A stretch of DNA of 37,908 nt from Klebsormidium nitens (taxonomy: Eukaryota; Plantae; Klebsormidiophyceae): NCBI GenBank assembly GCA_000708835.1, contig DF237136.1:1-37908 (forward strand), given 5' to 3'. Positions 961-35,435 of the stretch are shown here, piece by piece. The position numbers and the translations under genes were made by a program. Under the pieces are notes generated by a model, which searched no databases, was not told where the DNA came from, and saw nothing but the letters and a program-made list of their open reading frames with translations. The stretch's first letter is position 1. Every line of letters begins with the position of its first letter.

Positions 961-1586
961 CTCCCTCGTGAGATAGCCGGAAACGGGCGAGCTATGGCAC
1001 CGACGGACGTTGCACGCCAGGTATGAGAACCTGGCGAAGATGGTGAAAGACAATTTCGTTAAAGGTGTTGGCGTGAAACCCGGGGGCGTTCAAGGCGCTC
1101 AAATCCTCGGTGTGTGAGCCGTGCATCATGAAAAAGCAAACGCGGCCCCCCTTCCCAAAATCGGAGTTGGTAAGCATGGAACCTCTCGAGCTGGTCCACA
1201 TGGACGTGTGCGGGCTGATGCCAGTCCCCTCGGTCGGGGGGAGCCGGTACTTCGCCGCGTTTTTGCCGACTTCAGCAAGCTCTCGGTGGTAGTCCCCATG
1301 AAGCAGAAGAGCGAGGTAGCCAAGGTGACCGAGCACGTGATTAACCGGTCGGAGTTGCAATCGGGGAAGAAGCTCAGGTCGGTGCGGACGGATTGGGGGA
1401 AGGAGTACGTCCACAAGGCCCTCAAGGACGTGTTACGGGGGCAAGGGGATGGTGCACGAGAAGACCGCCCCCTACATAGCCGAGCAGAACGGATCGGCAG
1501 AGCAGCTCAACCGGCAATTGAAGGAGAAGGTCCGGGCGATGCTCGAGGATTCGGGGTAGCCCAAAGAGATGTGGGCGGAGGCCGTT
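961..1586 (+). pseudogene. Copia GAG-pre-integrase and integrase core, disrupted and running into an N gap
   Basis: CEPC zinc motif and VHMDVCG. Frameshift near 1265 and an in-frame TAG before PKEMWAEAV. Confidence 0.9.
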
Positions 1587-2284
1587 NNNNNNNNNNNNNN
1601 NNNNNNNNNNNNNNNNNNNNNNNNNNNNNNNNNNNNNNNNNNNNNNNNNNNNNNNNNNNNNNNNNNNNNNNNNNNNNNNNNNNNNNNNNNNNNNNNNNNN
1701 NNNNNNNNNNNNNNNNNNNNNNNNNNNNNNNNNNNNNNNNNNNNNNNNNNNNNNNNNNNNNNNNNNNNNNNNNNNNNNNNNNNNNNNNNNNNNNNNNNNN
1801 NNNNNNNNNNNNNNNNNNNNNNNNNNNNNNNNNNNNNNNNNNNNNNNNNNNNNNNNNNNNNNNNNNNNNNNNNNNNNNNNNNNNNNNNNNNNNNNNNNNN
1901 NNNNNNNNNNNNNNNNNNNNNNNNNNNNNNNNNNNNNNNNNNNNNNNNNNNNNNNNNNNNNNNNNNNNNNNNNNNNNNNNNNNNNNNNNNNNNNNNNNNN
2001 NNNNNNNNNNNNNNNNNNNNNNNNNNNNNNNNNNNNNNNNNNNNNNNNNNNNNNNNNNNNNNNNNNNNNNNNNNNNNNNNNNNNNNNNNNNNNNNNNNNN
2101 NNNNNNNNNNNNNNNNNNNNNNNNNNNNNNNNNNNNNNNNNNNNNNNNNNNNNNNNNNNNNNNNNNNNNNNNNNNNNNNNNNNNNNNNNNNNNNNNNNNN
2201 NNNNNNNNNNNNNNNNNNNNNNNNNNNNNNNNNNNNNNNNNNNNNNNNNNNNNNNNNNNNNNNNNNNNNNNNNNNNNNNNNNNN
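1587..2284. other. Assembly gap (N run)
   Basis: Continuous Ns between the copia integrase and RT. Confidence 1.
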
Positions 2285-2472
2285 GGTGCGAGAGAGCAGA
2301 GCAGAGCCGGAAGAGATTGCGGAGGACATAGGGCTGCCAACACCGGCTGCTCAGAGGTACCCCGCGCGTGAGAGACACGCGCCAGGGGAGTGGTACCGCG
2401 CCAACTTGGAGGCGGATACGAAAGCGGGGGAGCACCCCAAAGGAACGGGGAACATCCAGAACCGCAGAGTTA

Positions 2473-3808
2473 TCAGAAAGCCGTAGGGGGAGAAGAGAGT
2501 GACCTCTGGCGGAAATCTATGGACGATGAAATGCGTTCCCTGTTGGAGAATGGGACGTGGGAAAATCGGAAGGGGTTAAGCCGGTTCCTATAAAGTGGGT
2601 ATACAAGATAAAGCGGGACGCTCACGGGAATGTGGAGTGATACAAGTCCCGGCTGGTGGCCAAGGGCTACCTGCAGAAGCAGGGTATTGACTTCGACGAG
2701 GTCTACGCCTCGGTGAGCAAGCACACGACGTTACGTGCACTGCTAGCGGTGGTCGCGGAGCGCGACTTGGAGCTGCACCAGCTGGACGTTTCTTAACGGG
2801 GAGCTAGAGGAGGAGATTTGCATGCAGCAGCCGGAGGGATACGAGCAAGGTGGGCCGGAGATGGTCTGCCCCCTCAAGCGCACCTTGTACGGTTTGCGCC
2901 TGAAGGAGGAGCTCGGGAACTTTGAGTTCGTGGCGTCAATGGCGGATGCGGCGCTCTTTACGGAAATAGTAACCGGGGAGCGGGTGTACATAGTGGTGTG
3001 GGTGGACGACATTCTAGTGGCGGCCCGGGGAGTGGACCGCATTGCCAAAGTAAAGGCGCATTTGGGGGAGAGGTTCGACGTGCACGACTTGGGGGAGGCA
3101 AAGCTTTTATTTACTCGGAATGGAGCTGACGCGCGATAGGGAGGCGCGCACCCTGAAGCTAACGCAAAAGAAGCTGAAGGGAGAGCTTGTGGGACGGTAC
3201 GGACTAGCAAGCGCTCGGTCGCGCTCAGTCTCGCTCGGAACAGGAGACAAATCAACCAAAGAAGGTGAATTCCTCGACACAAAGCGGTTTCCCTATTGTG
3301 AGTGCGTGGGGAGCCTCTTGTACTTGAGTGTGTGCATTAGGCCCGACATTGCACAGGCAGTGGGTGCGCTTGCGCACTTTATAGCGGGGCCGACGAAGGA
3401 GCGCTGGCGGGCGGCGCTTGGAGTTGTGCGCTACTTGGCGGTTACGGCAAAGGGCGAGGTAACCTTTGGGGGGAGCGGAGAGACTTTCATTCCTTATTGC
3501 GACGCAGATTACGCAGGTGACGTGGACACAAAGCGGTCCACAACGGGGTACGTCTTCCTAATGTACGGGGGGGCGGTGAGCTGGTCGAGCAGGCTGCAGC
3601 CAACGGTGGCGGCCTCGACAGTAGAGTCGGAGTATATGAGCGCAGGGCAAGCGGTGAAGGAGGCGCTGTGGTTTCGCAAGCTCGGGGTAGATCAGAGTTG
3701 GATCTAGGGACGGTCCTGATCTACTGCGACAACTAAGAGGCAATACGGATCCTCAAGCAATTGGTCACTTCACAGCGGTCGAAGCACATTGACGTGATTC
3801 ATCACTTG
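2473..3808 (+). pseudogene. Copia reverse transcriptase and RNase H, disrupted
   Basis: RVT_2-type motifs, with deletions after LDV and LYGLR and a frameshift near 3120. RNaseH motifs DADYAG and TVESEY are present. The sequence stops after KHIDVIHH with no PPT or 3' LTR. Confidence 0.9.
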
Positions 3809-3919
3809 TGAAGTGCCGCGTTCCTCAAGCTCGCAATTGCTGTTCTCCTTGAGCACACCGAAGCGACCTCACGAGGTATCTGCGGTGCTTTCTTTGATCC
3901 TTGTGAAGTGCCGCGTTCC
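3805..3919. repeat. 20-bp exact direct repeat at the truncation point of element A
   Basis: cttgtgaagtgccgcgttcc at 3805-3824 and 3900-3919. Confidence 0.95.
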
Positions 3920-4559
3920 GGGTGCGTCCAGGACCGTCTGCGTAAATACATGGAAGGTTAATTCTCGACCGAGAACTATTGCGACCATCGTAGGACTGCG
4001 ATGGACAGTCGCCGGGTGTCGGAGTTTGGCCAAAAGTCCCCGGGTTCGGAAGTCGATACATTTAACGCGAATTTTATGCATACTACATACCTACACGGTA
4101 CGGTACTTTAGTAGCTCGTTGATATTGATGTATCATGTGAGGCAACTACCTATTGTAGGTCTCTACCTAAGACTTGGCGTTGTGTAGCCTAGGCCCTAGC
4201 CTCAACCTAAGCTACGGTACCAATATGTGGACCATCCCCAGTAGATGCCGTACTCGCATAATCGTACGACATCGGTCCCAATCGCTGATACCACGACTTA
4301 GATGGTAGGCACTATGGGTAGATTTCTGTTGGTCTTGTACGCGCAGAAATAGTTATATTAGTACGAATACTCGGTGGTATGTACTGCTTGCACTTCAAAC
4401 CACATGTAGAGGCGGACCGGCGGACCTTACAATGCGAGTCGCATTGCATGTCAACCGTACGATCTTCTACTTGGAGATCTACTCATCTTGATGTCCTTTT
4501 GGCTAGACTTTGAAGGAAGAGCTTTGTGGGATTTCATGCGTCGCCTTCAGTTGAAGGAG

Positions 4560-5243
4560 TGTTGAGATTCACCTTGTAGGGGACTAGAATTGTGTGGTTT
4601 CACTCGTCATCGGGTCTTATCGTAGTTGCCNNNNNNNNNNNNNNNNNNNNNNNNNNNNNNNNNNNNNNNNNNNNNNNNNNNNNNNNNNNNNNNNNNNNNN
4701 NNNNNNNNNNNNNNNNNNNNNNNNNNNNNNNNNNNNNNNNNNNNNNNNNNNNNNNNNNNNNNNNNNNNNNNNNNNNNNNNNNNNNNNNNNNNNNNNNNNN
4801 NNNNNNNNNNNNNNNNNNNNNNNNNNNNNNNNNNNNNNNNNNNNNNNNNNNNNNNNNNNNNNNNNNNNNNNNNNNNNNNNNNNNNNNNNNNNNNNNNNNN
4901 NNNNNNNNNNNNNNNNNNNNNNNNNNNNNNNNNNNNNNNNNNNNNNNNNNNNNNNNNNNNNNNNNNNNNNNNNNNNNNNNNNNNNNNNNNNNNNNNNNNN
5001 NNNNNNNNNNNNNNNNGTCACACACTACTAGGCTCACTAGCCTAGATCACACTCACACTCAATCATAGCCATCGATATCCTCATCTACGGCTCCATATCG
5101 GCGGCCCTCTCAACCGCCTAACCTCCAAGGTTAACCGCCTAACCGCTGTGCACGCACGCCGGCGCTCACTAGTTCAAACCCTAACTCGGTCCGAACCCTA
5201 ATCACGGAGTTATCCGGCTGACCATAATCACCGGATTCTAACA
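4560..5243. mobile_element. Second solo LTR of the same family (contains the N gap 4631-5016)
   Basis: Termini TGTTG (4560) and TAACA (5239-5243). 5-bp TSD AGGAG at 4555-4559 and 5244-5248. The 3' half aligns closely with 744-955. Confidence 0.88.
4631..5016. other. Assembly gap (N run)
   Basis: Continuous Ns inside the second LTR. The equivalent stretch of LTR copy 1 is only about 190 bp. Confidence 1.
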
Positions 5244-22483: not shown

Positions 22484-24495
22484 CTAGTCCTTCATCTCGG
22501 AAGTATCTTTCCCCTCGGCACCCTCAGTTTCCGTCTTCGCTTCCGTCTCCATCTTCGCTTCCGCCTCCTGCTTGGGGTCAGGAACGGCGTAGTACTTGTA
22601 GTGCAGCTCCCCCACGTCGTCCCCGCTCACCTTGGTCCACCCGTCCTTGCCCACGTGGTACACTGCACCACCAGCACACCCGCTCAGACACGCACGCTTC
22701 GCCGCTGGCAGAACCCAGCTAGCTGTAGCCATTAGGTGCTTGAAACAAGGGCGCTTCAACAGAGCGAAACAGAGTGTAACAGGGCGCCGCTACAGCAGAA
22801 CACCACCTCGACCACTCACCGCTGACGGTGCCCCCGCTGTAGGCGTCCCGGAAGGTGGCGTGGTAGATGGCGCGCCGCCCCAGCTCCTGCGCATCTTCGC
22901 GGCTCATGTTCCACTGGTACCTGAAGCGCACATCAGCAGATCAGAAAGATCAGCAGAATAGCAGATTAGCAGATCAGGCAGATTAGCAGATTAGCCCGCG
23001 CCACGCCCCCAACCCCGTGCCACAAACGACAGCAAGCCGACAACTGGGTGTGTCTGTCGCCCGCTGCTTTCAGAGGTTGCAGCGGCAGTGTGCAGGGCGG
23101 CCTGGCCGGCCTGGCGGGCTCACCCTGTGTCCAGAACCCCATACGCATACGTGGACCCCGAGCCCACCGAGAAGCGCTTCCCTCGGACACGTGAACCCTC
23201 GCTGTCGACATAGAACAGACCCGGCCCCTGCAAACGCAGCAGGGTACACCTTCAGGGACAGCCATGTGGATACATCTAGAGCAGCCTGCCCCTGCACACC
23301 TGCTAGCGGGAGCGAGGGCGACTGGGACTGAGAGAGCTCCAGTAAACGCCCCTGAGCGACTTGGAACACGCAGGACTCTCCTCCTCTACCGGGGCTGCTT
23401 TCAGCACTCGCCCATATTGTCCCGTGGCCCAAGGCCATCCAAATGCAGCCGTTGCTCAGGCGACAGTAGGGTGGAGGGGCCAGCGTACCGTCTCATCCCA
23501 CCCCGCGACCATGGTCCCCTGCACAAGCCCAAAACCACTGGTGAGACACTGAAGAGGATGTGAAGCCTCACGTGCAGACACATGAAGTGGTGTAATCAGA
23601 CAGGAAACTCTTCCCAATCACTGGACAGCAGCGTACCAAAGTGGCGGAGGGCGATGGCTGACCATTGAGAGGCCCATTCCCTTGTAGCCGTATAGCGTGT
23701 TGGCCAGCAGCTTGGACGCGCCGGTCACACTGATGCGCTTCTTGTTGGCCAGCTCGTGCAGCCGGCACTGCACACCACGCACAGCAGGCGCACGTCAGAA
23801 AGAAGCGGTGCCAGGGTCCAAAAAGGGCAGCTGACGCGGTGCAGCCCCTCATGTGCTGACCACAGTGCGCAAAGGGGCCTGCCCGCACGCCTCTCCCCAG
23901 AAGCGCCCTGCTCAACCTGGCTGGATGCAGCACGTTCTGCCGGGGGGCATGGCTGCGTACACTGACCTGGATGCCGAGGTCCCGCTGCCAGAACTGACAG
24001 TCAGCGGCGCCACCGGCCATGGTCCCCAGCAGGTACGGGTTGATCTCAATCACCTTCTTGACCGTCTGGGACGCTGCACAACACAACAGCAGGACGGCCA
24101 TGTCAGAAGAGAGAATCAAGTGCCTTGCCCTTCTTGACACACTTTTTGACAGCCATCCCCAGATTATCGCAAGTCGCTGCCCTGTTGGCGCAAGGCCCCC
24201 TTTTCACAGCATCGCCCATCGAAAGACTCGTGACGCCAGTAAATCATAATACTTTGCGAGCAAGAAGAAAACGCCAAGTGTTGGAGATTCACAACCAATC
24301 GGCGAAGTGACGTGGATTCGCGACGGATGAAGTAGTGCTGCTGGATGCGCCGGTGGCAGGCTCACAGATGTAGGGTCCCATGCTGGCGCGCGAGTCCACG
24401 GCCACCACCACCCCGTGCTGGTAGATGAAGGCCAACGTGGTGGTGCCGTGCGCCGGCTTCACCAGGTCCACCGCCGCAGCCTCAAAGCCATCGAG
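22484..24495 (-). CDS. PSMB5: 20S proteasome subunit beta type-5 (PBE); the first exon probably lies at ~24600-24765 and is unresolved
   Basis: Exons 24495-24366, 24073-23967, 23767-23663, 23518-23489, 23227-23124, 22920-22820, 22662-22484, all in phase. Motifs: AHG-TTTLAF (catalytic Thr1), [69 protein letters not shown]. Confidence 0.96.
22931..22995. repeat. Degenerate 8-bp tandem repeat (GAT[C/T]AGCA) in a proteasome-gene intron
   Basis: catcagcagatcagaaagatcagcagaatagcagattagcagatcaggcagattagcagattagc. Confidence 0.8.
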
Positions 24496-25155
24496 CTGCA
24501 CGCACGGGCAGGAGCGGGGCGGGGGTGGGTGGCAGGACAGCAACAGCAAAAGGAGGCAGCCAGCTGCAGGGGATGGGCATAAGAGGCAGCCCAACCATGG
24601 ACAATTGCACGGCGAATTTATGACAGGCCAATGAAGTTGCGCCAGCTCAAATCTTGCAGGTATGCTTGGGGGCACTCCTGCACAGTGCCAACCCGCTCGT
24701 GCTCTTCGATCCTGTTTTTGATGACCCTAAGTGGACTCCCTGTAGGTTCGAAACGTCGATGACATCGCTGTATCAAATTCAGCGATGCAACCAGAGTGAT
24801 CAACACGAGGAGGATGCACAGCGAGCCCAGCCATGCCAACCGACGGAGACGGTCACTATCAACCATGTTTGGCTGCAATTATGCTTACGTCTTTCACAGC
24901 TGGGAGCTCAAACCCCGGAAGTCCCAGCAGGGTCCCAGCCCCCGCCTCTGGAACCTGTCGCCTCAGCGAGGGGGGATCCAAGCAGCGCATGTCCAGCAGC
25001 ATGGTGGCCACCAGATGCCTTGTCCTGCAATAACGACCAGAAGCCCAAGGTCCGGGTGAACGAGCTTTGATACAACTATCCGGAGCAAGAATAGCGTCTT
25101 GGAAGCAATCCTGGCCTGCAATCAGTTGAACACGTACAGCCTCAGCAGGCTCAAG

Positions 25156-25947: not shown

Positions 25948-28900
25948 ATGTTTCCAGTCTTGAAAGCGCAATTTGAAAAGGCGGTGCCGAAGCAGTCGGC
26001 TGAGGTGGATACAGTGCACTATACTGAGCATGTAACGTTCTCATTCAGTGCAAGGTTGCCGCGTGCAAAACTGCACTCAAGAAACAGGTGAGTGAAAAGC
26101 CTCAGGATGGGAACATTCTGTCACTGCTTGGGGTCTGCTACAGCTGATCGGCTACACAATTGAAAGAGTCAATGCAGTGGGAAAATTTCTCTGGCATCCC
26201 CATCGATGGTGAGGGCGTCTCAGAGTCTGCCTCAAATCATACAGTAGGCTTCGAAATCCTCAATCTCGGCCCTTACTATTGACCTTGTGGACAATTTGGC
26301 AAGGGTAGTGGCACAGCATTGCCTTTCTCTCCTCCTGATGGGGTAGCGAGGGTGCATTTGAGGTCTTTGCAGCTCTGACCTGAGTGCGGACGGTACGCGA
26401 GACACTTTCTCTGTCATGTACAGGCGAGCAAGGAGAGTGTTTAAGAACCTGTCAGCATCCAATCCCCAAAGAGAGTGTGAACTGGATGTAAGCCAGCCCT
26501 TTACTTGGTTGCACTGCTGAAACTATCTGGCTTATGACGTGCTGACGGCCTTTTCTTCATTGGAATCACAGACAGTGGTAAAGTGATGTGCAGCATAGTG
26601 CGTCATTTGAGCTTGTGCTGTGTTGTGCGGTCCTTTGCAGAGTCCTGCCTTTGAGTGGGTGGACTACAGCGCTCCTTCAGTGTGCCTCGAGGAAGAGGAG
26701 GATGGGGCCTGCCTCCGGGAAGAGCCCGCCCCCTGTTCTGAGGACCCCAGTGCGCTGGTGTGCTCCATTGACACCCGCCAGCTGCCACAGAAGAGGTGGG
26801 TGCACTCTGGGCTGTGTTGCCTTAGCAGTTAAGGCCTTCAAGCTAAGCCCCTTGAGAAGTAGCTAGCTGAGGAGCTAGCGGGGGATTGGACGTGTCTCGC
26901 TTGTTTCACACGAAGTACCACTCATGACAGTTTGGAGCACAATACACATACAGTTGATCTGTAGACTGGGAGTGGCGGTTTCACTGCAGCCTTGGCCTTG
27001 CAGGAAGCGGCGTCCTTGGGTGTCTCTCGTCATTGACGACATGGGGGTGGATACCTGGGCCTCTGAGAGGGCCGTCCGCCTGCGCCCCGCTGTCACGCTG
27101 TCGTACCTGCCTTATGGGCCCCAAGTACGGCAGCAGGTGGGCAAGCCTGCCGCGGCAGCCATGCAAGACCAACAGATTGCCGCTGATATTGTTGTCAACA
27201 CTTGGCACCTCCTGCGATGCCCTCGTTGAGGAATGCCACATTGAAGACCTGTCCAATCGCTCAACGGCGGAGCTGAGCTGTGGTGTTGCAGGCTCGGGCA
27301 GCGGCGGCAGCGGGGCACGAGTTGATGGTGCACCTGCCGATGGAGCCGTTCAACAAGGCGGCAGACGCGGGGCCCAACGCGCTGCACTCCAGCATGGCGC
27401 CGCACCAGCTCAAGGAGCACCTGCACTGGGCGCTCTCGCAGTTTGACGGTAAGAACTAGCCCGATGCTGAAGGGCAACGTTGTCACAGCAAGCTGCACCG
27501 CACTTGCATTGAGAATTGAAAATGCCCTGCCCAGCTTCGTCTGGCTTTGGAACTTTCTGACGAGTCCGCTTCTAATCCATCATCTGTGATATTGCAGGTT
27601 ATGTTGGGTTGAACAATCACATGGGGAGCCTGTTTACCAGCAGGTCCCCGGGGGGTATGACGGTGGTGCTGGAAGAACTGCAGAAACGAGGTGGGGCCCC
27701 TTACACCACTGTCCATCACAGCATCGCCAGAACTTGTTAGTGCTGTTTTTGGTAATAGAGTCATCGAGTTCACTACTCCTGCCAGGTTCTGTGGACTTGG
27801 GCCACTCACTGTGCCCGTCAGGCGCTGTCATCTCGGGCTTCGCTGACGTCTGTCTTCCTGCGCAGAGCTGTTCTTTCTGGACTCTCTGACCGCCACAGAC
27901 AGTTTGGGCCAGGAGCTGGCAGCCCACCTGGGGACCACATTCGGTGCACGCGATGTGAGGCTGCGCTGGCCGGCCTCCATAAACATGCCTGCTCTTCTGT
28001 TGCCTGATCTCTCCAATGCTTGTCTTTTGCCAACGAACTGCCCTCTCCCCTTCTTGTCAGCTGCACTCTCCTATCCCCAGGGAGCTCGCAGGCCTGGCCC
28101 TGGCTGTCCATGCACTCGTTACCCACGTCCTGTCCTTGACTGGGTTGCGTGCAGGTGTTCCTGGACTCACAGCGCGGGGCAGTCTCTGCGGTGGGGGAGC
28201 GGCTGCAGGAGGTGGAGCAGCTGGCCCACAAGAATGGGCATGCCATTGGTAGGCGCACATGCCTGCAGTCGACCTTTTGACGGGCCTCACTCTGAGGAGG
28301 TTGAGAGCCATCGTGTCGAAAGATTCCTGCAGATGCACAGCAAAACTCTGGTCCTGGCCTGACCGTTGACATGTGCACTTCTGCGTGCAGCCATCGGGCA
28401 CCCATACGATGAAACGCTGGAGGCCCTTGAGAAGTGGCTGCCCCTGCTGCACAGCAAGGGCCTTGTCCTGGTGAGCCACGGCCGTTGCACCTCCGGCACT
28501 GTCACCATTGCAGATGCAACCAGCACGGCCGAGAGAGTTCAGCCGCACCTGAAGTCGCACCTAGTCTCCAGCAGGTGGACGATGCGGCCTTGTCGCATCT
28601 GAGACTTGTCTTGACAGGGGGTGCTCTGGCGTGGGTGCAGATGCCCCTCAAGAAGGCTCTCCTTCGGGAACGCAAGGAGCGGGAACGAGCTGCAGGCGAG
28701 GCGGTGCTGGCCTTCACGCGAGCTAAGCAGGTGCAGAGTGTGGATAACACCTGGTCGTGTCCAACTTTTCCTTTCTACGACGACTCTTCTGCACGAACAG
28801 TGCTTTCCAGAAATTGAGTCTCAGAGTGGCCATAACATGACGACGCCGAGCCCTCCAGCAAGCTGTTTGAAGATGCCCGCTTCCCACTGACGTTGCGTTC

Positions 28901-31541
28901 CTGTTGGCTGACTTCATTGTGTGCTTTGTAGCTGCGGGCCATTCAAGCGCAGCGCGACCGGGCCTGGCAGGAGCGCCAGGCGAAGCTGGTGGCGGCAGAG
29001 CTGGAGCAGGCCTTTGGGGACGGCACGGTGCTGGCGTGGCAGGGCCTGCAGGATGCGGGCGTGGAGAAGGCGCTGCGCGCCGCGCTGGCGAGGCAGCGGC
29101 CGCCATCCGGCAGCCTCAAGGCGAGCCTGCAACGGCTGCTGGCAGCACCGTTCTGGGGAGGCAAAACGGAGGAGCCGCAGGTGGAGAAGGCCGCGGCGCG
29201 GCTGCTGCGCAGGCGGGGACACCCACAGCAGCGGCCGGACCTGTTGGCCACGCGGGCAGGGGGCCTGCACGCCCACGCCTTACTGCACCCGAAGCTGCCC
29301 GACATGGTGCGCCGGGGCCGAGGCAGGGCCAGAGGTGGGAGGGGTCTTGTGGACAACAGTCTGCCGATGCTGGCTGTGAGGGACGACGTGAAGGCCGTTC
29401 AGCAGGAGGGTGCCCGTTGCGAGGAAGCAGGGCCAGGAGGGGATGTAGAAAGGATGGCAGGCAGCAAGGGCCCCCCACGTCTGGTCGGCAAGAGACGCAG
29501 AGGCAGGCAAGACAGGGTTCCTCGGGCGGAGGTGGGCCAGCCATGCCGGCAGCAACGGCAAGCAGGCGACGAGGCGCACCTTGGAGGCGCTTCACAGGAG
29601 GGCAGTGGCGCCACGGCGGAGTGGGCTCCCCTGTCAGGACACCCGCTCAGCTGGACGACGGGGGAGGACAGCAACGAGGCCGCAGCGGACCTGCGACGGG
29701 GCGTGCTGGTGGCAGCGGCGCTGCAGCAAAGCCGGGGACGGCTAAATGCGCCAGGAGGACGGACAGGCCCAGGTGGGAGCGGGTGGCGGGGTGGGGCGAG
29801 AGCTGTGAGAGCTGGAGGGGGCGAGAAGGACCCCGCGGCAGCCCAGCAGCGGGGCGGGGAGGCCAACGAGGGCGCCATGCAGCGCTGGCTGGCGCAGCTG
29901 GGTGGGGGCAAGCTGTCCGCCGGCAGCAGCCCCAGGAGCGTCATCGTCCCTGAGGCACTTGAGGAGCCAGCCGACGCCTCCAGCCCCGAGCACTCGGCCC
30001 CCGGAAGTCGTACGCCGTCTCTCTCGTCCAGTGAAGTGTCCACTTGCGGGACAGGCCCGGCTGTGCTGGAGGGATGGTCGTCCCCGGCGCGCAGCAGCAG
30101 CTCCAGTGACGATGTGCCGAGCAGTCTGTCGGAGGCCAGCTCAGGCGAGGAGGCAGGCCCCGCAGGCGGCGCAGCGTGGAGAGCAGCGCTGCAGTCGGCC
30201 TCCACAGTGGCAGCCGCACTGGCGGTGGCCATGCACCTGGCGGCACACGCCCGCCGGAAGACTGAGGAGGCAGCGCAGGCAAACCCGCCCAGGCTGGCTG
30301 GCCCCTCAGGCTTCACTGCTGCGATCGGAGGACCCGAACAGTCGCTTGGGCCAGAAATGTCGGCGAATGGTGTGTCGCCCAAGAAGGCGACCCGGTGCAG
30401 TTTCAGCAGGCTGGAGATGCGGCCTGCGGCGGAGCTGTCCGTTAAAGCGGCGGCACCCGCCAGCTCTGCAGCCCGCCCAGCTGCGCAGGCAGGAGTCCGG
30501 GCCGCAGCTGGCAAGGAGGAGGTGCTGCCCTCTACGGCTTCTGGTGCGGATGCGGATGGTGCGGCGGGCAGCCTGGCGCGCCCTGCCTGCCACGCCCTGG
30601 CCGCCCTGGAGAAGCCCACACAGGACCGCCCGCCTCTGGCCCTCACCCCAGCTGAGGCGAGCGGTGAGGAACTGCCAACACAACCACAGACGGGCGGGCA
30701 CGAGGCCCGGCCCGCGTGCCAGCCAGCAGCCAGCCCCGAGGGCAACCCAGCAGACGGTATCGGGGCGCCCGCGGTGCTGCAGCAGACGGACCACGCTGGC
30801 CGTGAGCTGCGGCGGGCCGGTCTGGTCGCACCAGGCGTCCCGGGCCAGCGACGAGCACGAGCCGTTACCTCCGAGGAAGGGGGACGCGCCTCCCAGGGGC
30901 CGGCCGTGCTGGTGGCCCTCAGGCAGCAGGGAGAGGCCGAGCAGGGGGCGGCCCAGCCGGTGTGCTCCCTCCCAGGTGCGGTAGATGTGGCAGGGGCGCC
31001 AGGAGCTGCGAGCGGAGCAGCTGGGGCTGAGGAGGCGCAGCTGGAGGAGCCAGGGTCGCCTACGGCCAGCGGCAGCTTGAGTGCGGAGCCGGAGTGGTGT
31101 GACGCCGAGGCGGAGCCCGTGTCGCCCGCGAGCACCCCTTCGTCTTGTGCAGCCAGCGGGGTGCAGGGGTCCGTTGCGTGTCAGCTGGCAGCTGGTGGAC
31201 GCGTGCAATATGAGTACACCTCCACTGGGGACGGGCCAGCGGATGCTGTGCATGCGCCCTTAGGGAGCACGGCAGTGGGTACAATCAGCGAGTTGAGCAA
31301 AGCGATGGGGCGCTGTAGCGGAGAGGGGGCCCGCTCAACGGCTAGCAAAGCAGGCGCAGGCGTGCAGGGAAACATAGAGGCGGAGCAGAGCAAGAAGTTC
31401 GGCTGGTGGCGCTGGACGGTCGGGTGTGTCCTGGGAGGCTTCGAGGACGCAGGGACGAGAGAGAGCGGGGACCGCATGCGGCCAGCAGCTCTACACGGGA
31501 AAAGACGCGTTGTACCCCTCGACGTGGACGATCCGCAGTAA
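25948..31541 (+). CDS. Divergent polysaccharide deacetylase (PF04748/YibQ-like) fused to a long low-complexity C-terminal region, 11 exons, ~1234 aa; the first two exons are tentative
   Basis: Exons 25948-26087, 26424-26487, 26641-26795, 27004-27136, 27292-27448, 27598-27690, 27866-27954, 28155-28248, 28391-28470, 28641-28730, 28932-31541, all GT-AG and in phase. Motifs VSLVIDDMG, TLSYLPY, HELMVHLPMEP, GLNNHMGSLFT, FFLDSLT, RDVFLD and AIAIGHPY occur in the canonical order. Confidence 0.85.
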
Positions 31542-33331
31542 AGAATTACTCACTTCGACTGCTAGCCTAGGCGTGTTGTTTATTTAGTGTTTCGAGTTGC
31601 TCTACTTGTTGCAGGCTCGTCTCCTAGCCTCCTCACACAAAGTTAAGAGACGTGCAATCCTTGATACAACTGCAGATCAGGGAACTCAGCGGAGTAGGTA
31701 GTCACCCGCCTGTTTGCATCAGTGGCGCATGGGTGACTGTAAAGTTAGAGGGTTGCCGCTTTGACAGACGGTAGCTTCAAACCGGTTCCGCAACGCAGCA
31801 ACAGTTCAGGCCCAGTCAAGCGTTGGCACATTGCTAAGCTGTTCTTACAGAACTAGAATGTCTGAGGGGCTCAATATGAATTGAAGACGGGACTGTTGTT
31901 ACCTAAGCACACCTGCATTTGGTTCTCAGCCTTAATCTTGAAAATGGTGCATGTACATGTAAATGGTACATTACATCAGCAGTCGTAGTAGTCGATCCGG
32001 AAGCAATGATCCTTGCACGGCGGCTGCAAGCCCTTATTCTGATCAAACGTACCTTATGTCAATATCCAGGCATGTGCAACGTAACTGCTTGCCCAACAGT
32101 CTCACCTGTATGTGAGCACTCGATTGCCAGCGCTGACCGTGTATACTCCGTATACTATGATATCTCTAAAATTAAGTCGGACATGGTTTTAAGAAATCGC
32201 AAGCCCATGAGCCATTGACTCGAGTTTTCACAGGTATACGTGGCCGGCTATATACAACGCAATGATCACGGTCACTCGCGATATATTTTATCCTCCAGTA
32301 TGATTCCATACAAGGCGGCATGCACATAAAACCCTGCAGCCTCTTAGAGATCGATCGCAGCACTGTGATGCCATCAGCTAGATTTCTGACTTCACTGCTT
32401 CATTAGGTTATAGATCGACGCAGAACTCGATTGTGTCGGGTCACCTGCCGCGCTGAGGTGGAGCTTCAAAACGTGGACGGTACCATGGCCCTACGTACAA
32501 AACATGGTTGAAACAAATTGCACACTTGTCTAATACAGACTTACGGACTTCTCGAGACTCAAATTATACTCGGCCGCGTTGATTACAAAAGCTTCCTGCC
32601 TCTTGCAATTCGATCATTGCGCAGCCGCACCTCAGGCTCGCAGGCTGTGCACGGCCAGAGTCACCCCTGGTTGACACATCTGGGAGCTTACGTTCTCGTG
32701 CACCAATGACTGTTTGCAATTACAATCACTGCTGCGATCGCAACCGCGATGGGTCAATCAAACCGCAGAACCAGCTTATAGTCACCTTCATATGCTCTCA
32801 GATTGCGGAGTCCTAGAAGTTGTGCGGTATCTTTTGGTGAAATATCTTCTCACAATCAGGATACGTGCATCAGCTTTCCAGCCATGCATGGAGGAAGGAA
32901 GGGAGGACCTCCTCAGGTGCGAATAGTCGTGTCAATAGTGGAAAGACTGTCGAAGTGGAGAGTTCTCGAGCAGCCGGTGCGTAATACGGTCTTCAAGAGA
33001 TCCTCTCAAAAGCGTACGCGACTGACTCGCTCAAGAGGAGAGTCCGCTGGGACTAAACCTCTTTTTATGTTACGGTTTGGTTTTGTGTTCAGTTGAGACC
33101 TTTGTTGTGCTGGAAAGGGTTCCTTTTGGGCTTGCTTAACCTAGTCTCAGTCCTCTTTCCAGAAAGCAAGTTTGTCATGTGTTCTCAGCCTCCTAGCTCT
33201 GCACCGGCGCCTGCGCCTCCATCAGGCTTCAACGGTACAGAAATTCCTCTCACGTGCTTGACGTCGTCCCGAATCGGCGACCCTTTCCGTGTAGCCGTCG
33301 GCATATGGGATGTGTGGAGCTCGGCGGTCGC

Positions 33332-35435
33332 TTACGTGAGAGCCGCAAGCTGTCGGCGGATTGGCGAGATCTCTGCAGCGGCCACGACACCTGAAAGCTG
33401 ATCAGGACGTTTCGGCAAAGCCTGCCGCCGGCCAGCACCACGGCTTGAGAACTAGTTGCACGCTGGAAGCAATCTCTGCGAGCCGCACCAAATTTTCACA
33501 CGGCACTCGTCTGTGGGCAAGATATAATGTGAGTTTCCGTGCGTGGGAGCACGCAGCAGGGGTGCGGCGCCTCACGGAGGTGCGTGTCCAGGTCGGGCCG
33601 CGCGTCGCCGCTCGCGTCCTCGTCGGTGAGCAGCGGCATGGGCTGCACCAGCAGCTGCAGCGAAGGGACGGCCCCGGCCGCCTGCTGCACATCACGGGGC
33701 AGCAGGGGAGCGGCGTCAGGGGGCCACTGCAGTGGTGGAACGCGGGGAGGACGATCAGGGGCGCGCTACTCGCAGCCAGCACAGGATCAACCAACTACAT
33801 GAATCTAACTAGTGGAGGATCTGCAGATGACGATGGGCGGTCTTGGCGACGTCACCTCAAGAACGAGCTTGCGAGTGATGCCAGCAACGGGCGGAGTGGC
33901 GGCGCGGGGGCGCTTGCCTGCTTGTAGCTGAGCATGAGGTCCTTGAAGGCCTGGAAGTCGCACAGCGTCATCAGGAAGTCGAAGACGTCGCCCTCCGCCT
34001 CCCCGTGCTCGCTGCACACACACGCCGGCCGCTCAACGTCGTCCGAGCTGCTGCTCATGCATCTAGGTCCAAAATCACATGAGTGGTGGTGGATCAGAAC
34101 GCGCAGCCCGTCTTCTTCAAAGTTGCAGGGGTTGACCCTTGTTTGAGTAACATAGAGCGTCCGGATTTTTAATCAGGCCACGCCCGCTCTCAGAAAGCTC
34201 AAAGGGGCCTGGCAGCTGGAACGGGTCACGTCCTTTGGCTTTGTGCGACGCTGCCCTGTTGAGGCGCCTCACCTGAGCTGGTGCAGGAAGTCGTGGAGGG
34301 GCAGATCCGGGAGCGCCTCCGCCAGGCGCGCCGCAATCACACCGTCCAGCACGTCCACCTGCACCACACACGCGCTCAGCACTGCACTCAGCAATGCAGG
34401 GAATAAGGGAGGGGCCGCTGATGCACCTGCCGCTCTCATTTTTACGGAGGTAGCCAGGGCAGCACGGGGCAGCAGGGCAGCGGCTGGAGAGCTGGAGACT
34501 GGGAAACACTGGGGACTGCACGGTGGGCTCACGTATTGTTGGAAGAGCTCCATGTACTCCAGCTTGTTCTCATCACTGTCCTCAAACACCGCACAGTGCG
34601 CGGCGCAGAAGGACGTCTGGGCCTCCTCAAAATCCGCATCTGCATAGCGGCCCACACTGCTGGTAAGTGGTCACATCTGCGATGGCCACCGGCATACTGG
34701 GAGCCAGAAACAGTGTGCCCAAGAGAGATGCTTTGCATGCTGCAGAGACAAAGCAACCAGAAGTTGACCTGGTGACCATATGTAGCACACGTCGTCGCTG
34801 GCCAGGGTGGCGGCCCCCTCTGCTGGCCTGCTGCCGCCAGCTGCAGTGGCTCACCTGTGATGATGTCCTCCAGCGCCCCCACCATGCGGTCAAAGTCGGC
34901 CTCAGCCCCGCTGCTGCTCCTGCATGGCCAGGCCGCCCAGGGATGAGCAGCAGGGAAGGCCGCCCGCCAAGGACAAGGGGGCCAATCCAGACTGCCGTGC
35001 TCCTTTGAGGAGGCTGGTCATACCTGCTGTCTGCAGCTTTTCTATGACAGCAGATCAATGCACGAAAACCAATCTAGTAAACAGAACATGCGGTTGATAA
35101 CTGATCTGCAGGTGGTGCACCCTGCAAGCTACAAGAGCCAGATTTCTAGAGCTGACAAATCGAATTTTCAACTGTTTCTAGCCCTTACATACAGCAGTCG
35201 ACGACCTCCTCCATCCCATCAGGTATGCACTGCGAGTCCTGGCACTCATCAGCTGCAAGAAGACAAGACAAGCTCGTCAAAGTGGCTCTGCTCCGGAAAG
35301 AAGATCTAACCCTGCTCTTCACTAGATCAAAGATTCAACCTGCTGCAACACAGACAAGAGCAAGGGCAGGCCACTCATGGGCTCACCAATAATGTCCACG
35401 TCAAGATCCTCAAGCAGAGGGCTAGGACCGGCCAT
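33332..35435 (-). CDS. ARL2BP: ARL2-binding BART-domain protein (ARL2BP-like); the last two exons are tentative
   Basis: Exons 35435-35387, 35252-35189, 34919-34855, 34639-34533, 34358-34273, 34011-33918, 33684-33576, 33390-33332, all in phase. Peptides ADFDRMVGALEDII, FCAAHCAVFEDSDENKLEYMELFQQY and GDVFDFLMTLCDFQAFKDLMLSYK match the ARL2BP pattern. Confidence 0.85.

Follow-up and report, generated by a model that had tools for sequence, protein, structure and literature searches.

The stretch of DNA considered here (the window, 37,908 nucleotides of contig DF237136.1, assembly GCA_000708835.1, of the streptophyte alga Klebsormidium nitens) carries on its forward strand a nuclear gene of 11 exons, the coding sequence of which (25948-31541) runs from an ATG at 25948 to a stop codon at 31539-31541 and specifies a protein of 1234 amino acids. 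Part of this protein belongs to PF04748, the family of divergent polysaccharide deacetylases that includes E. coli YibQ, and the gene is, as judged from its sequence, a new eukaryotic member of this known enzyme family. The explanation that we consider probably right for the whole is that of an expressed 11-exon gene with an intact PF04748 deacetylase domain, acquired by transfer from the Alphaproteobacteria. The translated spliced model is identical to a public protein of the same length (P0001, retrieved by a word search that took the last exon, free of introns, as its query), entered in NCBI, UniRef and EukProt as ‘Divergent polysaccharide deacetylase superfamily [Klebsormidium nitens]’. 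The gene is already in public annotation and apparently undiscussed as far as we found, no paper having been met that mentions a eukaryotic PF04748 gene.

Gene structure, transcripts and neighbourhood

The gene is expressed and spliced. The transcript evidence consists of Logan contigs of four runs, from four different studies, mapped onto positions 26000-31900. All ten introns, each with GT..AG ends, are missing from these contigs at the predicted boundaries (two of the ten being upstream additions to the model), and every exon boundary is matched by a joint. The four runs are not recorded as RNA, yet contigs without ten canonical introns can have no other source than spliced transcripts. The same contigs are unbroken between 28930 and 31900, and the 3′ untranslated region reaches at least 31900. 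An earlier, sequence-only reading of this DNA had rebuilt the deacetylase domain from six phase-consistent exons between 27004 and 28470. That reconstruction holds, as each of the six exons matches the PF04748 profile alone and in collinear order (together positions 1-205 of 212), and all the motifs it named (IDD, HLPMEP, NNHMGS, FLDS, RDVFLD and GHP) are present; its interval covers the catalytic domain part only of the coding sequence.

A word search with the last exon also found an open reading frame (ORF) of 879 amino acids (P0002), 63% identical to the tail of the K. nitens protein, on an 18-kb contig of a related alga (locus L025, Logan assembly of SRR23617307). All ten upstream exons lie on this contig as well, with identical lengths and AG/GT flanks. 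Between the two algae, identity is 66-74% in the introns and 95.4% in the domain, where the ratio of nonsynonymous to synonymous substitution rates (dN/dS) is 0.069 at a dS near 0.33; strong purifying selection thus acts on the domain in two species at least. The same ratio is 0.25 in the N-terminal 122 residues, of which residues 68-122 are nearly invariant, and 0.57 over the tail as a whole, with 0.37 in residues 366-460 and 0.25 in the last 69 residues.

Residues 68-122 (26641-26795) form an acidic stretch with, by our own count, four cysteines (C83, C92, C100 and C109), and with no detectable family.

The exons of the gene and its two neighbours, each with its strand, are as follows.

25948-26087, plus strand: exon 1, from the start codon through residue 46 to the second base of codon 47; joint at 26083/26420 (cut +4), GT..AG, in four runs; spliced model identical to P0001.
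26424-26487, plus strand: exon 2, N-terminal extension; transcript joints; equal length with AG/GT flanks in the ortholog L025.
26641-26795, plus strand: exon 3, a part of the N-terminal extension that is conserved and acidic and has four cysteines, with basic KRKRR at its end; transcript joints; residues 68-122 nearly identical in L025.
27004-27136, plus strand: exon 4, start of PF04748 with VIDDMG (ligands D131 and D132); profile 1-36, 26.1 bits; transcript joints.
27292-27448, plus strand: exon 5, HLPMEP (ligand H178); profile 38-88, 53.1 bits; transcript joints.
27598-27690, plus strand: exon 6, NNHMGS (ligand H224); profile 91-119, 26.8 bits; transcript joints.
27866-27954, plus strand: exon 7, FFLDS; profile 121-149, 16.0 bits; transcript joints.
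28155-28248, plus strand: exon 8, (RD)VFLD; profile 150-178, 16.3 bits; transcript joints.
28391-28470, plus strand: exon 9, AIGHP and the end of the domain; profile 180-205, 23.4 bits; transcript joints.
28641-28730, plus strand: exon 10, start of the long helix after the domain (residues 338-393 in the model; AlphaFold2 helix 279-334 of the 60-460 construct); transcript joints.
28932-31541, plus strand: exon 11, a tail of about 870 amino acids rich in Ala, Gly, Arg and Ser, and the stop codon; conserved islands at residues 366-455, about 670-700, 779-805 and 1166-1234.
22719-24675, minus strand: exons of a proteasome beta-subunit gene, three pieces of which match PF00227; directly upstream of the deacetylase gene.
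34269-34655, minus strand: exon of an ARL2BP/BART gene (PF11527, E = 3.8e-10); downstream of the deacetylase gene.

An ATG at 26416 was considered as the start of the protein and discarded, as the transcript joints place it inside intron 1; the true start is the ATG at 25948. Intron 1 stays unspliced in a short contig (26059-26449) of three of the four runs, at a depth below that of the spliced contig. With this intron retained, the ORF from 25948 stops shortly past the exon end, and the in-frame ATG at 26416 could start a protein without the first 47 residues. A 578-amino-acid ORF antisense to the last exon (29399-31135, minus strand) is read as an artefact of the 72% G+C, the transcripts supporting the gene on the plus strand.

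With a family that is otherwise bacterial, and with best matches that are bacterial too, it could be suspected that the gene is a bacterial contamination, a product of mis-assembly or a dead pseudogene resembling a gene. Its setting leaves next to no room for such a suspicion, which we regard as refuted. The window is eukaryotic nuclear DNA with eukaryotic genes at both sides of the deacetylase gene, and the proteasome neighbour is found upstream in the contig of the related alga as well, so that synteny is conserved together with the exon structure. In addition, the ten GT..AG introns are all spliced out in the transcript contigs of the four studies, the reading frame is intact across 1234 codons, and the low dN/dS of the domain is not that of a dead sequence.

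Elsewhere in the window, the G+C content of positions 1001-5000 is 0.30-0.42 in parts, with strong GC and AT skew, as compared to 0.5-0.7 in the gene region; the low G+C of this stretch may point to a repeat or a mobile element.

The deacetylase domain

The whole protein matches PF04748 with 239.2 bits (cut-off 27.5; E = 3.4e-71) over residues 128-340 and positions 1-210 of the 212 of the profile, and no other Pfam or NCBIfam family is matched in its 1234 amino acids. PF04748 is also essentially the sole match when the gene is scanned exon by exon, the one other, on the sixth piece, being far below threshold. Neither the tail nor the N-terminal extension gave a match in a feature search of the ESM Atlas.

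The fold tells the same. The domain matches the sequences of the two solved members of the family, BH1492 of Bacillus halodurans (2NLY, 2.5e-24) and Atu2773 of Agrobacterium tumefaciens (2QV5, 6e-27), and an AlphaFold2 model of residues 60-460, in which the domain has a predicted local distance difference test score above 95, is placed by Foldseek next to these same two structures, with template modelling scores of 0.91 for 2NLY and 0.85 for 2QV5 and a root-mean-square deviation of 1.5 Å for both. More distant structural neighbours are the CE4 and the ChbG/YdjC deacetylases. The algal protein shares the Zn-binding Asp-Asp-His-His site of BH1492, whereas Atu2773 has GG aligned with the algal DD ligands. 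Both solved proteins are single-domain bacterial proteins of unknown function, unlike the algal one.

E. coli YibQ, described in the sequence-only reading as a deacetylase of peptidoglycan glycan strands, is indeed SddA, which deacetylates N-acetylglucosamine (GlcNAc) in denuded peptidoglycan strands (bioRxiv 10.1101/2025.02.18.638797; also PMC12440217). It does not act on intact sacculi or on muropeptides, Zn is putatively bound by D31, D32, H78 and H123, and a D31A/D32A mutant is inactive (bioRxiv 10.1101/2025.02.18.638797). Residues D131, D132, H178 and H224 of the algal protein align with these four ligands, so that the metal and catalytic Asp and His residues, presumed to be there by the same reading, are in place; the four columns do not vary among the 8 sequences of this alignment, nor among the 28 rows of a further one. 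Taken together, residues from about 125 to 340 are supported, from their sequence, as a catalytically intact, metal-dependent deacetylase domain of the YibQ/SddA type.

The likeness to SddA goes beyond the family and the four shared ligands, as in both proteins a globular catalytic domain lies close to the N-terminus, with a long flexible region after it on the C-terminal side. On the other hand, SddA is a periplasmic protein of 319 amino acids with a signal peptide, whereas the algal protein, with its 1234, is without such a signal, and the operon that sddA forms with envC in E. coli has no counterpart at the algal gene, operon linkage being in any case inapplicable to a eukaryote. If the mechanism is that of SddA, the only characterised member, as the conserved Asp-Asp-His-His site suggests, the metal coordinated by D131, D132, H178 and H224 would activate a water molecule and the N-acetyl group would be removed from the GlcNAc of a GlcNAc-containing glycan.

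Origin and rebuilding of the gene

A full HMMER scan of 1.84 billion representatives, which carries no taxonomy, found 11812 relatives. The best 150 of these are 42-53% identical to the algal domain, have 237-738 amino acids and carry the domain at their C-terminal end. The named top matches are all alphaproteobacterial (Inquilinus, Oceanibaculum, Magnetospirillum, Azospirillum, Aestuariispira, and metagenome-assembled genomes of Rhodospirillales or Alphaproteobacteria). Similarly, the best loci among species-representative genomes are those of Rhodospirillaceae and Rhodovibrio, with 46-50% identity, those of Acidobacteriota, Gammaproteobacteria and Desulfovibrio being only 34-41% identical.

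In a maximum-likelihood tree of 60 rows drawn from the best matches (LG+C20), the two algae are joined with 100/100 on a stem branch of 1.12, and the pair lies inside a clade of 45 rows, supported by 98/93 and with inner nodes of 97/87 and 99/91, in which all labelled rows are Alphaproteobacteria. Its neighbours are rows of the Azospirillum, Oceanibaculum and Magnetospirillum types, in a branching order that the tree leaves unresolved. An affinity to Alphaproteobacteria is thus well supported by the sequences and a nesting within them seems likely; horizontal acquisition from bacteria is supported in the same way, the donor having probably been an alphaproteobacterium.

The sequence-only reading had proposed that the gene was acquired either horizontally or endosymbiotically and was intronised afterwards. 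Of the two routes, transfer from bacteria agrees with the alphaproteobacterial relatives and with the tree, whereas a cyanobacterial endosymbiotic one is not supported, as the close named relatives are all alphaproteobacterial. No cyanobacterial protein is present among the named top matches, and because of this lack among the close matches an origin from the plastid ancestor is unsupported. The later gain of introns fits the data, given the ten of them in a transcribed gene.

The same reading would have been at odds with homologs widespread across eukaryotes, and a different picture emerged: no entry of eukaryotic source other than the query is found among the best 120 of 1295 matches in the band of 341-1085 amino acids, nor among all 13 matches in the band of 679-2160. 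Mosses, other charophytes, glaucophytes and ferns are without a homolog among these listed matches. Some long PF04748 proteins (751-906 amino acids) were suspected of being eukaryotic and set aside; one is bacterial by its gene context, and all have the domain at the C-terminus.

The closest sequences to the algal domain, with 46-53% identity over its whole length and in a common clade with it, are Rhodospirillales-type bacterial proteins of 320-480 amino acids in which a membrane anchor at the N-terminus is followed by a linker rich in Pro and Ala and, at the C-terminal end, by the domain; to our knowledge, none of them has been characterised. A simple Kyte-Doolittle scan (19-residue windows, threshold of at least 1.6) finds a hydrophobic window in 138 of the 150 closest bacterial proteins, nearly always in the first 60 residues, in agreement with an anchor in the membrane that is joined through a linker to a C-terminal domain in the periplasm. 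The layout of the algal protein is reversed, with introns in its gene and with extensions of its own. The same scan finds no N-terminal hydrophobic segment in it, the best window (1.43) being at residues 783-801, a conserved Ala-rich stretch of the tail. Judged by eye, as all targeting signals were apart from the hydropathy, it has no signal peptide and no obvious transit peptide, a reading of the N-terminus to be taken with the varied routes into the space between the envelope membranes in mind. Four of its first 30 residues are acidic (positions 10, 18, 20 and 27), and basic clusters that resemble nuclear localisation signals are found ahead of the domain (RNRRARR and KRKRR) and in GKRRRGR.

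According to the explanation we favor, the domain would have entered the Klebsormidium lineage by horizontal transfer from a Rhodospirillales-type alphaproteobacterium. The transferred gene would then have gained ten spliceosomal introns, lost the bacterial N-terminal membrane anchor and acquired an alga-specific N-terminal extension, together with a long C-terminal region made of a coiled coil and then a mostly disordered tail.

Several points weigh against this explanation, or against parts of it. In an approximately unbiased (AU) test, an alternative in which 43 bacterial rows form a group that excludes the algae is not rejected (log-likelihood difference 18.4, p = 0.086). As to the donor, therefore, the placement in the alphaproteobacterial clade stands (98/93), and strict nesting within Alphaproteobacteria is not secured by this test and is not claimed. 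The tree contains no cyanobacterial sequences, and the eukaryote screen covers the listed matches only, proteins below 341 amino acids not being screened by source. SddA, the only member from which a function can be borrowed, is just 30% identical to the algal protein over 222 aligned positions. The absence of a visible export or targeting signal, as far as the sequence tells, seems hard to reconcile with a periplasm-like substrate. Lastly, an envC/M23 gene is adjacent in neither (0 of 2) of the two closest bacterial loci examined, L001 (with trpC/trpD and a histidine kinase as neighbours) and L003 (with a P-type ATPase and MerR), so that the division-linked role of SddA may not extend to the donor subfamily.

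There could also have been no recent transfer at all, the gene descending instead from the alphaproteobacterial ancestor of mitochondria, or from some other ancient acquisition, and having been lost in nearly all other eukaryotes. In favor of this are the alphaproteobacterial affinity, the long stem branch of the algal clade (1.12) and the position outside the sampled Alphaproteobacteria that the AU test (p = 0.086) does not reject. However, in the unconstrained tree the algae lie below three supported nodes, among Rhodospirillales-type sequences, the identity to these reaches 50% as opposed to 34-41% to other phyla, and, with no other eukaryote among the listed matches, very many independent losses would be needed. 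Such a descent is very improbable, and a transfer from bacteria continues to be the explanation that we favor.

Possible roles in a peptidoglycan-bearing alga

The most plausible single class of substrate, by analogy with SddA, could be peptide-free (denuded) peptidoglycan glycan strands or their fragments, which is a tentative suggestion and more doubtful than not.

The sequence-only reading suggested that the enzyme could remodel plastid peptidoglycan, which streptophyte algae and mosses keep, during division, or else could deacetylate a polysaccharide of the algal wall. For the host itself the former layer has been reported, the plastid peptidoglycan of K. nitens having been visualised by Takano et al. 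2018 (Cytologia 83:375), as cited in PMC9434261 and PMC9954125, and Klebsormidium also has a homolog of DipM (LysM-LytM) (PMC4015805). One could then imagine the enzyme being imported between the membranes of the plastid envelope and deacetylating denuded strands of the plastid peptidoglycan when the chloroplast divides, much as SddA works at the septum of E. coli. Denuded peptidoglycan glycan is, after all, the only substrate shown for the family, and the catalytic site is both intact and under strong purifying selection. Even so, the N-terminus, with its acidic residues at 10, 18, 20 and 27, shows no hydrophobic signal, and the near invariance of residues 68-122 between the two algae is unlike what is seen in a cleaved presequence. 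In addition, mosses, other charophytes and glaucophytes keep plastid peptidoglycan and yet provide no homolog among the listed matches, and the gene is not of cyanobacterial origin. A role of this kind is, on balance, unlikely.

The gene can also be compared with the peptidoglycan genes of streptophytes (Mur enzymes, PBP and DipM). These are, like the gene studied here, nuclear, intron-bearing and of bacterial ancestry, in a lineage with peptidoglycan-keeping plastids (PMC4015805, PMC9434261). However, glaucophytes, charophytes, mosses and ferns all share them, and their effects on the division of chloroplasts have been demonstrated, whereas the PF04748 gene is found, among the matches listed, only in Klebsormidium-type algae.

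Alternatively, the enzyme could stay in the cytosol or the nucleus and act on another acetylated substrate, such as peptidoglycan fragments that are imported or recycled, chito-oligosaccharides or some other metabolite or glycan with GlcNAc, in which case the long tail would be a scaffold or a localisation module. This is a possibility to be taken seriously, though we would sooner expect it to be wrong than right. In its favor are the lack of a signal peptide, of an N-terminal anchor and of any clear transmembrane helix (the best 19-residue window being the 1.43 of residues 783-801), the nuclear-localisation-like RNRRARR, KRKRR and GKRRRGR, the long helix that AlphaFold2 predicts after the domain, and the presence of the cytoplasmic ChbG/YdjC chitooligosaccharide deacetylases and of CE4 enzymes among the structural neighbours that follow the two PF04748 structures. 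We know, however, of no PF04748 member that acts in a cytoplasm; nearly all close relatives are, by their architecture, membrane-anchored and periplasmic, and nothing indicates a specific alternative substrate.

It is tempting to speculate further that Klebsormidium may have rebuilt, out of bacterial genes, the bacterial septal pathway for denuded strands, using it to split or recycle the peptidoglycan of its chloroplast. In such a pathway an amidase would strip the peptides, after which an SddA-type deacetylase and a DigH-type glycosidase would process the bare strands, the protein described here being the SddA step. We rate this as quite improbable; if true, peptidoglycan deacetylation would here serve the division of an organelle for the first time in a eukaryote.

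In conclusion, a family with no assigned function until 2025, when E. coli SddA supplied the first, has an expressed, spliced and strongly conserved eukaryotic copy in an alga with a peptidoglycan-bearing chloroplast, which makes the gene a concrete and testable candidate for the modification of that layer. It is also a well-documented case of a bacterial enzyme that seems to have been transferred, supplied with introns and rebuilt in a lineage near the origin of land plants. Should the protein prove to be unrelated to the plastid, it would be one more lineage-specific transfer of modest interest; its significance would rise sharply if localisation or biochemistry tied it to the peptidoglycan of the chloroplast.

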